A stretch of DNA of 64,000 bases from positions 11,408,001 to 11,472,000 of the forward strand of contig CATNEN010000007.1 of the NCBI GenBank assembly GCA_950097015.1, given 5' to 3'. Of this stretch, positions 3,001 to 7,100 are shown piece by piece. This DNA is from Macrostomum hystrix. Taxonomy: Eukaryota; Animalia; Platyhelminthes. The position numbers and the translations under genes were made by a program. The notes beneath the pieces are model-generated. The model was not told where the DNA came from. It searched no databases and was given only the letters and a program-made list of their open reading frames with translations. Each line of letters starts with the position of its first letter. Within the stretch, counting starts at the first letter, position 1.

Positions 3001-6000
3001 ATGAAAGGCGTTGCCAAATCGGCTTTTCTTGCGCTCCTTGGTGGTGAGGGTCTTGACCGGCTTGAGGTTGAAGTTGTAGTCCAGGTGTAAGTAGTTCAGG
3101 TTCTTGCGGTGGATCAGCAGGTTCAGCATGTTGTAGCCCTGGCGGCACACTTGCAGGCCAGCCTGGGTTCGAATTCGTGAGGAGGGTGGGTGGTAAGAGA
3201 TTGAGGAATCAGTTACCTCAGCTGGAAATTCTTCTTGACTGGGGCTCTGTTTATAAAAAGCGTAGCTCAGTACCTAGGAATATCGGCTTTATCTTTAAAA
3301 AAAATAAAGCATGAAAGCAAGAATCCCGCCTACCTGAGGACTGAGAGCATGAATTCAATCTATCTGAGGACTGAGAGCATGAATTCAATCTATCTGAGGA
3401 TCTAAGAGCATGAATTCAATCTACCTGAGGACTGAGAGCATGAATTCAATCTATCTGAGGACTGAGAGCATGAATTCAATCTACCTGAGGACTGAGAGCA
3501 TGAATTCAATCTACCTGAGGATCTGAGAGCATGAATTCAATCTACCTGAGGACTGAGAGCATGAATTCAATCTATCTGAGGACTGAGAGCATGAATTCAA
3601 TCTATCTGAGGACTGAGAGCATGAATTCAATCTACCTGAGGACTGAGAGCATGAATTCAATCTACCTGAGGACTGAGAGCATGAATTCAATCTACCTGAG
3701 GACTGAGAGCATGAATTCAATCTACCTGAGGACTGAGAGCATGAATTCAATCTACCTGAGGATCTGAGAGCATGAATTCAATCCACCTGAGGATCTGAGA
3801 GCATGAATTCAATCCACCTGAGGATCTGAGAGCATGAATTCAATCTACCTGAGGACTGAGAGCATGAATTCAATCTACCTGAGGACTGAGAGCATGAATT
3901 CAATCTACCTGAGGATCTGAGAGCATGAATTCAATCTACCTGAGGATCTGAGAGCATGAATTCAATCTACCTGAGGACTGAGAGCATGAATTCAATCTAC
4001 CTGAGGATCTGAGAGCATGAATTCAATCTATCTGAGGACTGAGAGCATGAATTCAATCTACCTGAGGATCTGAGAGCATGAATTCAATCCACCTGAGGAT
4101 CTGAGAGCATGAATTCAATCCACCTGAGGATCTGAGAGCATGAATTCAATCCACCTGAGGATCTGAGAGCATGAATTCAATCTACCTGAGGATCTGAGAG
4201 CATGAATTCAATCTATCTGAGGACTGAGAGCATGAATTCAATCTACCTGAGGATCTGAGAACATGAATTCAATCTACCTGAGGACTGAGAACATGAATTT
4301 AATCTACCTGAGGACTGAGAGCATGAATTTAATCTACCTGAGGACTGAGAGCATGAATTTAATCTACCTGAGGACAGAGAGCATGAATTCAATCTACCTG
4401 AGGACTGAGAGCATGAAATCAATCTACCTGAGGACTGAGAGCATGAATTCAATCTACCTGAGGATCTAAGAACACATTAAAAACCAAACCCCTTACCTCA
4501 ACCCAGTCCAATGTGGTCATTTGGAAGAACTTGGTGGCCTTAAAGGAGCGGAACAGGTATCTCTTCTTTTGCGGCTTCGGGTGCCGATGCTTGAGAGAGT
4601 TAAGCACGTAGCATTTGAGCAGCTTCTGGTAGGACACGCGCACTTTAACGGGCATGCCAGTGGGGCAGTGCTCGCGGTACCAGCTCTTCACCAGAGGCAC
4701 ATCAACAGCCCGCCTGGTGTGGCCGGAGCGCAGGCAGAATGGCCGCGGCGCCCACAGCAGGCCGATGCCATTGGCCGTGTTGTCCGTGTAGAGCGGAAAG
4801 TCGGACATGAAAGCGGACACGGTGTCCGGCAGCTCGAACTCGTCCAGCTCCTCATCTGTGAGCTGACTTTCGGCGGACTTGGCGGCCGCCTTGCGCGAGG
4901 TGATCGGGTTGATGATGGGGTCGTAGAAGAAGGCCGGCAGGTCCGGGTCTTCGGTCTTGATGAACACCACGCTGGGCGTGTGGTACCAGCTCAGGTGCAC
5001 CTGGGGAATGCCAGGGTCAATGGATAAGTGGATATGCATGCTTATGACATGGAATCCACCTTTCTACTATTAGTAGGCTGACAAAATCAGAACTGACAGG
5101 CCTCAGAAGCTACAGCAGCTAAGCATAGGCAGCAACAGTTGTCGCACCCGAGGCGGTCCTCAGGCGCCGGGTCCACATGCTGGCCCGGATTCTGGACCCC
5201 TGCGCACTCATCATTGGCCATACGGGACTGACAATTCAAGAAATTTTAAAGTCATGCATTTTACAACTTAACAAAATATTGTCTAGCAATAAGCAAAACA
5301 TTATTGAATACTTCTTGCGAACCCATCACAATGTTCCCTACGATTCTATCAAAAAATGCTTCCTGCGATTCTATCAGAATGCCTCCTGTGATTCTATCAG
5401 AATGCCTCCTGCTATTCTATCAGAATGCCTCCTGCGATTCTATCAGAATGCCTCCTGCGATTCTATCACAATGCCTCCTGCGATTCTATCACAATGCCTC
5501 CTGCGATTCTATCAGAATGCCTCCTGCGATTCTATCAGAATGCCTCCTGCGATTCTATCAGAATGCCTCCTGCGTCTTCTTGGCTTTCCCAATCTCACCT
5601 GGAACGGGTACGAGTTGTACAGGTACGGAAAGGCGATCCTGTACTCCGTGCGAATTGGTTGCCTGATGATAATCTTGTGAATATCGTTGAACTCGTTCCA
5701 GTCTTCATCCTCCAGGACCCGGTCCTTCACTAGGGGTTCGAACTTAGGCCCGCCAGGTATGGCCACGTTGAGCGCCTTGGCAGTGAAGAAGCTCTTCAGA
5801 TCAAATAGGTAGAAATAATTGTCATCCATGAGGTCGGTGAGCAGCTGATTGCCCAGCCTGTACAGGCAGGACATGACGGGCAGGCTGAGGTTCCAGCGCC
5901 GGTAGGTGGCACCATTGACCATGCCGGTGCCCACCAGTGGCTTGTGCTCATAGAACCACTCGGCCACCGGGCCGTCCTCCTCCGGGTCGAGCTCGAGCTG

Positions 6001-6846
6001 CACGGCCTCCTGCGGCTCCACATCCAGGATGTTGTCGCTATAGTCCAGGGGCGGCTCCTCGTCGTCGAATGGCGGGAAGCGCATGCGCTTGAAGTGCCGC
6101 CGGTCGTATTTCTCGCGGCGCATGGCGATCCACATGGTGCCCCACTGGGCAATGTACAGCGGCTCGATCACCTGCGAACCGGGGCAGGGAATTCACCAGT
6201 TAAAAATAGCACAGCATCCCAGCATACCATTAAAAAAGAGCTAAACATTCCTCACCCAGGGAATCTCATTCACAAAGGTGATGGCGCCAGTGATGTGGTA
6301 GAGCACGCTGACGTCCCGGATCTGCTCCCACGGCATCGGCATGTTCTCCAACAGTTTGAGCAGCGCGTGCGGCATGTACTTTAGCGAGCCCAGGTAAACG
6401 CGCTTGTCGTGCCGAAACTTCCGGCTAGTCATGTCGCCGTGGTCGCGCACGATCTTGCGCACGTGCTCAGGCGGCATCTCCTCCTTCTGGGCGTCAACGA
6501 AGCCGAATTTCCGCTTCTCTGCGTAGCGCTGCTCCTGCAGCTGCGCCCATTTGCGAGCCTTCTCGCGCAGCCGCTCTTGCGACAGCTCGCCGTCTGGCGG
6601 TTGCTGCTGCTGCTGCTGAGTGGCCTGCAGCGGTGGCGGATGCGGCTGCATGGCAGCATCGCTGCTGGCAGACGCAGGCATAGCCGTCGGCACTATAATT
6701 GACGGACCAAACGGCGGCATCATTGGCGGCGGCGGCAGGGGCGGCGGCAGCGGGATGCCCGGTATGCCGGGCACCTGGCCTGCCTGCGGAATCTGGTACA
6801 GGTAGAATGCCTGCCCGAAAAGGTAGGGCGGCGGAATGTTCGACAT
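1..6846 (-). CDS. PRPF8: Pre-mRNA-processing-splicing factor 8, 5' part (continues beyond window start). Exons: 6846-6256, 6171-5599, 5000-4497, 3162-2455, 2090-1400, 1006-391, 87-1
   Basis: Translations carry unmistakable Prp8 motifs ([103 protein letters not shown]). All six introns are GT-AG and keep phase. The N-terminus is Pro/Gln-rich. An upstream acceptor (TTTCAG) lies at 6884-6885. Confidence 0.98.
204..321 (+). mobile_element. tRNA-derived CORE-like SINE fragment in PRP8 intron 6
   Basis: tRNA-like head with B-box GGTTCGATTCC, followed by AGCAAGACACTCAACTCTGCATTGCCTCACTTCACCCAGC. Homologous to the copies at ~18.2 kb and ~49.5 kb. Confidence 0.75.
1208..1388. repeat. Dispersed repeat (copy 1) in PRP8 intron 5
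   Basis: Aligns by eye with 41675-41853 (shared cacctgtgtgagtgt.tgcctgcgtac.gtatctgtg ... gcagaattgcctcct ... gccctcctgcaa). Confidence 0.8.
2139..2411. repeat. 20-bp minisatellite (tgtcaggagacaatgggaat)n in PRP8 intron 4
   Basis: About 13 tandem copies directly visible. Confidence 0.95.
3330..4470. repeat. 30/31-bp minisatellite (ctacctgagga[t]ctgagagcatgaattcaat)n filling PRP8 intron 3
   Basis: Roughly 37 tandem copies visible. Confidence 0.97.
5099..5219 (-). ncRNA. Intronic box C/D snoRNA, U6 Cm62 guide (SNORD94/U94-like), copy A in PRP8 intron 2
   Basis: Sense strand: GGCC-A-ATGATGA (box C) G TGCGCAGGGGTC CAGA (D') ... TT CTGA (box D) GGCC. It has a terminal GGCC/GGCC stem, a 12-nt complement to U6 G58-A69, and ends 98 nt upstream of the 3' splice site. 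Confidence 0.85.
5341..5574. repeat. 23-bp minisatellite (gcgattctatcagaatgcctcct)n in PRP8 intron 2
   Basis: About 10 tandem copies. Confidence 0.95.
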
Positions 6847-6979
6847 TGGCGAGCTAGACTGGGTGCGGGATTTACTTCAGAATCTGAAAGGTGAAATATT
6901 AAAGAATATTGGCCATTCAACTGAAAGTTTTCATCATTCAACCTAGCCCAGCTGAGCCTTGTAAACTAATGTACAGGTC

Positions 6980-7100
6980 GGCCTCAGAAGCTACAGCAGC
7001 TAAGCATAGGCAGCAACAGTTGTCGCACCCGAGGCGGTCCTCAGGCGCCGGGTCCACATGCTGGCCCGGATTCTGGACCCCTGCGCACTCATCATTGGCC
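6980..7100 (-). ncRNA. Box C/D snoRNA, U6 Cm62 guide (SNORD94-like), copy B, in the presumed 5'-UTR intron of PRP8
   Basis: 121 nt identical to 5099-5219, with unrelated flanks. Ends 96 nt upstream of the acceptor at 6884-6885. Confidence 0.83.

Follow-up and report, generated by a model that had tools for sequence, protein, structure and literature searches.

Does the Prp8 gene of the flatworm Macrostomum hystrix carry, in two identical copies, the gene for a small RNA that guides the modification of U6? The question was raised by a first-pass annotation of a 64,000-nucleotide (nt) stretch of contig CATNEN010000007.1 (positions 11,408,001 to 11,472,000; hereafter the window), which was made from the letters alone and proposed that a block of 121 nt present twice in Prp8 specifies a box C/D small nucleolar RNA (snoRNA) resembling human SNORD94, with C62 of U6 as its target. 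Our approach was to compare the block with the rest of the genome, with the genome's own U6 genes, with the Rfam families, and with related loci in metagenomes. On the basis of these comparisons, each block is very probably a gene for an intron-encoded box C/D snoRNA of ~121 nt, the flatworm counterpart of vertebrate SNORD94.

Two identical box C/D blocks in the Prp8 gene

A repeat search of the window identified a two-copy family of 123 nt, at 5099-5221 and 6980-7102, whose members are 100% identical and have unrelated flanks. The position and identity of the 121-nt block were thus correctly given in the first-pass annotation, and the shared stretch extends to 123 nt. When the block was compared at the DNA level with all 220 Mb of the assembly, it matched these two places only; the block is not a dispersed or high-copy repeat, which excludes the genome-wide repeat that the annotation had named as the case that would speak against it. 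Copy A (6980-7100, minus strand, 121 nt from stem to stem within the identical block to 7102) lies 5' of the first Prp8 coding exon, and copy B (5099-5219, minus strand, 121 nt within the identical block to 5221) lies within Prp8 intron 3.

The minus strand from 4900 to 7400 is the 5' part of the Prp8 gene. The first coding exon (6256-6883, ATG at 6846-6844) contains matches to PF08082 (PRO8NT), and is followed by the second (5599-6171) and the third (4497-5000), all on the minus strand. The introns that separate these three exons are bounded by GT and AG, and in-frame translation of the exons gives conserved Prp8 sequence. A search with the exon at 5599-6171 showed that Prp8 is single-copy in the genome. 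Intron 3, the host of copy B, occupies 5001-5598 on the minus strand (GT at 5598/5597, AG at 5002/5001). Both copies are on the minus strand and therefore Prp8-sense, as proposed, and the intron around copy B is a canonical GT-AG one, flanked by conserved exons that are in frame. The distance from the end of copy B to the acceptor is 98 nt (5099 versus an exon start at 5000). For copy A, a pyrimidine tract plus AG at 6884-6885 (minus strand), 37 nt before the Prp8 ATG and read from the sequence only, is the predicted acceptor, and the distance is 96 nt (6980 versus an exon start at 6883). These are the 96-98 nt given in the first-pass annotation. Both copies thus have the sense orientation and the position ~60-100 nt upstream of a 3' splice site expected of an intronic snoRNA, the AG of copy A being a predicted one. 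The acceptor at 6885/6884 could be a cis acceptor of the 5' untranslated region (UTR) or a spliced-leader acceptor.

Read on the Prp8 sense strand, the 121-nt RNA has the full anatomy of a box C/D RNA, with every element that the annotation had listed (box C, box D, a terminal GGCC stem and internal hairpins). It begins with the 5' strand of the terminal stem, GGCC (RNA positions 1-4; copy A 7097-7100, copy B 5216-5219), which precedes an A and box C, AUGAUGA (6-12; A 7089-7095, B 5208-5214), of which UGAUGA is invariant in the family alignment described below. After a single G comes the antisense element UGCGCAGGGGUC (14-25; A 7076-7087, B 5195-5206), followed directly by box D', CAGA (26-29; A 7072-7075, B 5191-5194), in which C, G and A do not vary within the family (CNGA). 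Two nucleotides, AU, separate D' from a hairpin (A 7048-7069, B 5167-5188) with the stem CCGGG/CCCGG (32-36 paired with 49-53) and a loop containing a conserved AUGUGG. Next are CGC and CUGAGGA (57-63; A 7038-7044, B 5157-5163), then a motif-free stretch, and finally box D, CUGA (114-117; A 6984-6987, B 5103-5106), and GGCC (118-121; A 6980-6983, B 5099-5102), which pairs with the GGCC at positions 1-4. All of these elements are on the minus strand. Box C near the 5' end, box D near the 3' end and a short terminal stem were therefore all present. CUGAGGA is the best candidate for the C' box; the same heptamer follows AUGUGG in one of the metagenome relatives (L019), and in the flatworm RNA it could alternatively pair downstream with RNA positions 67-75 (copy A 7026-7034).

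The predicted U6 target and the relation to SNORD94

We compared the guide with the species' own U6. The genome contains four identical U6 genes, located on contigs other than that of the window, and they carry GGCCCCUGCGCAA at the human-equivalent positions. A U6 that lacks the target sequence, which the first-pass annotation had listed among the outcomes unfavorable to it, is thus excluded. A script-based comparison of the D' guide with this U6 gave 12 contiguous base pairs with G58-A69, 11 of them Watson-Crick and one G-U, exactly as claimed. The duplex begins beside D', and C62 faces the fifth guide nucleotide upstream of it (+5). The RNA therefore has what is expected of a guide, namely an antisense element of at least 10 nt that ends at D or D' and places a known modified nucleotide opposite +5. 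Human SNORD94 guides U6 Cm62, and its knock-down lowers C62 methylation (PMC6894857). A fifth, divergent U6-like copy lies on the same contig as the window, 1.7 Mb away (G000:C7:9676796-9676891), and scored 47.8 bits versus 118.

Both antisense regions were also slid over the genome's own 18S, 28S/5.8S/internal transcribed spacer (ITS), U2, U5 and U6 sequences. Apart from its U6 duplex, the best match of the D' guide, with 18S, 28S/5.8S/ITS, U2 and U5 included, was 8 bp. For the antisense element next to box D, no credible target was found in 18S, 28S/5.8S/ITS, U2, U5 or U6; the best pairings were of 9-10 bp with 3-5 G-U pairs.

At the gathering level, Rfam called nothing in the window, and at E <= 10 a search of 2.5 kb gave chance matches to bacterial small RNAs and microRNAs only. 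When 151 nt around copy A were compared with 4,227 Rfam families, SNORD94 (RF00613) ranked first, with 20.2 bits and an E value of 0.0058. In this cmscan alignment the stem, box C, GCGCAGGGGU and D' match the SNORD94 consensus in order and spacing. The same was found by MAFFT alignment with three Rfam-valid members: the flatworm RNA has the 5' module of the family, consisting of box C, GCGCAGGGGU, one nucleotide and CNGA, which selects U6 C62. A search of the whole genome with RF00613 gave nothing above 20 bits. The likeness to SNORD94 proposed in the first-pass annotation therefore held for the layout and for the identity of the best-scoring family, but the score of 20.2 bits did not reach the Rfam cut-off of 60. 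For this reason we call the RNA SNORD94-like and do not assign it to RF00613.

The two RNAs have in common the terminal stem, box C, 2-3 nt, GCGCAGGGGU, one nucleotide and CNGA, and this common 5' module means that the same U6 cytosine is selected. An AUG(U)GG hairpin stands right behind D' in both, both are long for a C/D RNA (121 nt in the flatworm versus 137 nt), and both are intronic and in sense orientation. They differ in the 3' two-thirds, which cannot be aligned, in D' (CAGA in the flatworm, CGGA in SNORD94), and in the hairpin stem (CCGGG/CCCGG versus CUCAGC/GCUGAG). The flatworm RNA also has Prp8 as its host and is present in two identical copies, whereas the host gene of human SNORD94 is presumably PTCD3. 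We conclude that the RNA of the block is a divergent homologue of SNORD94, its flatworm counterpart.

Relatives were sought by scanning metagenomes with a pattern taken from the box C, guide and D' of the flatworm RNA (TGATGA, 1-3 nt, GCGCAGGGGT, N, CNGA), which gave 29 loci. In the loci that are not chance matches, a box D and a terminal stem follow at a suitable distance. Three of them (L030, L034 and L037) exceed the Rfam SNORD94 cut-off with 64-93 bits, five (L013, L019, L026, L032 and L040) make up a group of higher AT content that goes uncalled by Rfam, and L012, with its duplicates L021 and L035, is of a shorter type. The six relatives outside Rfam have box C, the guide, CNGA and a following hairpin in common with the flatworm RNA. 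The scan thus yields a series from Rfam-valid SNORD94 to invertebrate-type relatives with a hairpin after D'. Sequence identity between the relatives and the flatworm RNA is 54-64%. The metagenome RNAs are like the flatworm RNA in guide, spacing, CNGA, hairpin and intronic sense orientation, and differ from it in D', which is CUGA in L019, L026, L040 and others but CAGA in the flatworm. Most of the GC-rich matches (L014-L018, L022, L025, L028, L029, L033, L038, L039 and others) were discarded as chance matches that resemble bacterial coding DNA. L027 and L031 were excluded as possible human or mammalian contamination; the two are identical to each other, come from two metagenomes, and have a 5' part equal to the Rfam consensus.

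In an alignment of ten sequences, the invariant columns outside the motif used for fishing are the AUG(U)GG element and the enclosing hairpin after D'. Given only the nine foreign sequences, RNAalifold predicted this hairpin, and compensatory changes were present in it. The flatworm RNA has the conserved SNORD94 hairpin with AUG(U)GG directly after D', and it fits five of the six pairs. In a model-guided alignment that includes the flatworm RNA, 93% of the hairpin cells are paired and three of the six pairs change on both sides; these counts lean towards the hairpin, since such an alignment is fitted to the structure. The covariation score of the hairpin was reached by 2 of 500 shuffles. In the flatworm RNA the hairpin is retained with another stem, CCGGG/CCCGG in place of UCAGCC/GGCUGA, and an exact CUGAGGA, as in L019, comes 9 nt later. 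Outside the boxes and the guide, nothing in the family is more conserved than AUG(U)GG (RNA 42-49; 7052-7059 and 5171-5178), which in vertebrate-type members takes the form UGAUGG, C'-box-like yet located within a hairpin loop.

A covariance model, R1, was built from the nine foreign sequences with the flatworm RNA excluded. It matched both copies, with 27.6 and 26.9 bits and E values of 6e-7 and 1e-6 (7.2 kb, filters off). In the 220-Mb genome the two loci were its sole matches at E <= 1 (E 0.019 and 0.029). The candidate was thus recognized by a wider-family profile from which it had been left out, with a score that is partly circular because the training set had been fished with a motif derived from the candidate.

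Host introns of the relatives and the origin of the two copies

The hosts of the metagenome relatives were examined by tblastn, using flatworm Prp8 exon pieces one by one as queries against the loci; the 3' part of the gene was taken from the stretch to the left of the window (L041). In L019, L026 and L040, Prp8 exons flank the snoRNA on both sides and on the same strand, and the host introns are short and canonical. The intron of L040 is 239 nt long, follows ...INPISHRNAVK, and has 61-70 nt between snoRNA end and acceptor. The corresponding values are 339 nt and 83 nt for L019 (YYRFNT / GPVGKG) and 246 nt and 78 nt for L026 (LTRLYLK / SEQERQ). All three intron positions are missing from flatworm Prp8, and the position of flatworm intron 3 is unused in L040. 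In all six intronic cases (copies A and B, L040, L019, L026 and L032) the snoRNA ends 61-98 nt before the acceptor; the range for the relatives is 61-85 nt. L019 also contains a snoRNA-free intron of ~320 nt (1752-2068, minus strand), which interrupts the Trp codon in ...VQLSW/YHTP... and lies five codons 3' of the flatworm intron 3 site.

L019 and L026 come from different organisms: where their coding parts overlap, the DNA is 75% identical. The L026 Prp8 exon belongs to the canonical metazoan type, being 97% identical to a teleost PRP8 fragment and ~87% identical to that of the flatworm; the hosts are therefore not close relatives of the fast-evolving flatworm. Flatworm Prp8 is itself unusually divergent, given how conserved this protein is: its identity to the proteins of many animal phyla over the conserved portion of exon 2 is ~85-90%, and its N-terminus is rich in proline and matched by none of the protein hits. 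A protein search with exon 2 gave no close relative, and the best match spanning the N-terminus was 60% identical.

Prp8 is not the only host. In L032 (5591-5691, minus strand) the snoRNA lies in sense orientation in a dynein heavy chain gene, between DHC_N1 and DHC_N2, and in L013 (187-288, plus strand) it lies, again sense, in a dynein heavy chain gene just 5' of the AAA-lid/AAA_7 exons. These two loci belong to related organisms and represent two different dynein heavy chain sites. L012 (5261-5356, minus strand; identical in L021 and L035) specifies a ~96-nt U6-C62 guide with D' CCGA in an acetyl-CoA carboxylase intron, between the ACC_central and Carboxyl_trans exons. Prp8 was the commonest host, in four of the seven non-vertebrate cases of this small sample, and the pattern of the same host gene with a different intron was seen twice. 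Since the same snoRNA occurs in Prp8 introns of three other animals or relatives of animals, its pairing with Prp8 is recurrent. The guide itself is of a known type; what seems to be new is the recurrent Prp8 host together with a guide that, from the intron positions, is apparently moving within its host gene.

The identity between the two flatworm copies ends exactly at the RNA plus two nucleotides (AU) on its 5' side. The copies would be either a very recent intragenic duplicate, made by copying the mature-size unit to a second site, or an older pair kept identical by gene conversion, and the latter version fits if conversion is confined to the sole homologous stretch. Both copies are flanked by direct repeats on the minus strand. 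Copy A has GACCAGTA at 7103-7110 upstream and GACCTGTA at 6972-6979 directly downstream (p about 0.01 in an anchored-repeat shuffle), and copy B has TGTCAGT at 5227-5233 and 5092-5098 (p about 0.003). In both, the downstream repeat starts at the block boundary; the shuffle test was post hoc. The repeats resemble target-site duplications, without a poly(A) tail, and are best regarded as a lead. Insertion-type mobility, if real, would account for the different intron in each host. A broader proposal, which we offer tentatively and hold to be rather doubtful, is that Prp8 and the C62 guide have been linked since early in animal evolution and that selection maintains this link. The guide would outlast the turnover of introns by re-inserting into further introns of its host gene, probably by way of an RNA or short-patch copy with target-site duplications as its trace, and the flatworm pair would be such a hop in progress. 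One transcript would then supply both the protein cradling the U6 catalytic core and the RNA modifying the internal stem-loop of U6.

Several other features of the region were recorded. Intron 3 contains a tandem array of ~13 repeats of a 23-nt unit (5309-5620) just upstream of copy B, and most of intron 4 is occupied by ~38 repeats of a 30/31-nt unit (~1.15 kb, about 3340-4495). A GC-rich stretch at 15243-16304 on the minus strand contains an ATG-started open reading frame of 353 amino acids, for which no homologue was found at E <= 1e-5 among 8,000 scored candidates.

Proposed mechanism, alternative explanations and significance

If each block is a SNORD94-like gene, the snoRNA would be transcribed within the Prp8 pre-mRNA and freed by splicing together with exonucleolytic trimming. 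During trimming it would be shielded by the C/D kink-turn, with its GGCC/GGCC closing stem and its bound core small nucleolar ribonucleoprotein (snoRNP) proteins. The 5' antisense element would then base-pair with the G58-A69 strand of the U6 internal stem-loop, and fibrillarin would methylate the 2'-OH of C62, opposite the fifth position upstream of D'. The comparisons establish the anatomy, the complementarity, the uniqueness in the genome, the family likeness and the Prp8 host in other organisms; expression, processing, methylation and any benefit of co-expression with Prp8 are what we infer.

A number of observations weigh against this interpretation. The SNORD94 score is below the gathering cut-off, and what the SNORD94 model aligns is limited to 31 positions at the 5' end and a false closing stem, with ~100 positions skipped. 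The C' box is ambiguous, the options being CUGAGGA (57-63) and the conserved AUGUGGA (42-48), both non-canonical. The fold of the RNA is no more stable than that of shuffled sequences (z = -0.44), although C/D RNAs commonly have an unremarkable fold energy and the result has no weight either way. With unlimited G-U pairs, 4.7% of the shuffles reached 12 bp with U6. That test was judged weak and was superseded by a version capped at one G-U pair, in which dinucleotide shuffling of the 121-nt RNA gave at least 12 bp with U6 in only 68 of 20,000 cases, position ignored. A chance origin of the duplex is unlikely on this count; over both tests, the complementarity alone is only moderately strong. 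The resemblance of the relatives in the 24 nt of the scan pattern is by construction, because the pattern came from the flatworm RNA, and their independent likenesses are the hairpin, box D, the length and the host gene only. Finally, copy A may lie outside a spliced intron, possibly in an outron. The case is carried by the position of the duplex and by the comparative evidence.

The alternative that survives best concerns copy A alone. Copy B could be the sole working gene, with copy A a recent, undecayed insertion in the outron or promoter region that is untranscribed, or poorly released if outrons are handled unlike lariat introns; we give this a real but minor chance of being correct. Its acceptor was predicted from letters alone, and the upstream exon and donor are hypothetical; the 100% identity of the copies suits an insertion too young to have decayed, and the direct repeats beside copy A resemble an insertion scar. 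If copy A were dead, however, the agreement between 96 nt (A) and 98 nt (B) to the acceptor would be a coincidence, and a GT donor candidate is present upstream of copy A near 7394. Y-branched outrons are debranched and trimmed as introns are. Release of copy A from an outron is therefore conceivable, outron processing being intron-like.

Less probable is that the block specifies a real box C/D guide for U6 Cm62 that is not homologous to SNORD94, its antisense element having converged on an invariant U6 target. Box C/D guides are short and able to arise de novo. The Rfam SNORD94 score far under the cut-off, the alignment of only the functionally forced 5' module, and the low pairwise identity to the relatives (58-64%) are all consistent with it. 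We nevertheless consider convergence unlikely, because the RNAs have likenesses that are independent of the target: a guide placed at D' and not at D, equal spacing to CNGA, and, straight after D', a hairpin with conserved AUG(U)GG followed by CUGAGG(A), which the target does not force. They also have an unusual length (about 100-140 nt) and, with three relatives, a host gene in common. The view that the block is no RNA gene at all, being a chance constellation of motifs or a mobile-element fragment duplicated in the gene, would fit the unremarkable fold energy and the direct repeats at both copies, but is highly improbable given just two copies genome-wide, a complete set of canonical boxes with correct order and spacing, independently found relatives that show compensatory changes and share the host gene, and a model that was trained without the block and finds nothing else in 220 Mb.

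The preferred interpretation, a flatworm SNORD94-like guide in Prp8, can be compared with other known systems. In Drosophila, scaRNA:Prp8 (CR43600) is likewise a guide-type small RNA in a Prp8 intron (PMC4053861). It is conserved in Diptera and Hymenoptera and has been cited as an example of the frequent nesting of small nuclear RNA (snRNA)-guide genes in splicing-factor genes; the 8th intron of Drosophila Prp8 contains mir-988 (PMC4053861). The description of scaRNA:Prp8 sets it apart from the flatworm RNA: it is a box H/ACA small Cajal body-specific RNA (scaRNA) that has CAB boxes and comes from the 4th intron, and U1, U5, U7 and U11 have been proposed as its targets instead of U6 C62 (PMC4053861). 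Known U6 methylation guides include mgU6-47, mgU6-53 and mgU6-77 in vertebrates and mgU6-47 and mgU6-68 in Drosophila (PMC3884663). These nucleolar box C/D RNAs methylate U6, as is proposed for the flatworm RNA, and do so at other target nucleotides (PMC3884663). Our literature search found no report of a U6 guide hosted by Prp8, of a flatworm SNORD94, or, for flies and flatworms, of any C62 guide.

These findings matter for the evolution of snoRNAs and leave the known working of such guides unchanged. They extend the SNORD94 family, which was defined in vertebrates, to a flatworm and several other eukaryotes, beyond the reach of the Rfam model, and R1 together with the motif scan provides a means of annotating the C62 guide outside vertebrates. 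The sole Prp8 gene of the M. hystrix genome bears its only two predicted C62 guides, and in four divergent organisms the Prp8 host is common and the intron is different in every one. This is a natural system for asking whether the pairing of a snoRNA with its host is selected for co-expression or merely inherited, and it may show how intronic snoRNAs move: over short range, within one gene, and possibly with target-site duplications.

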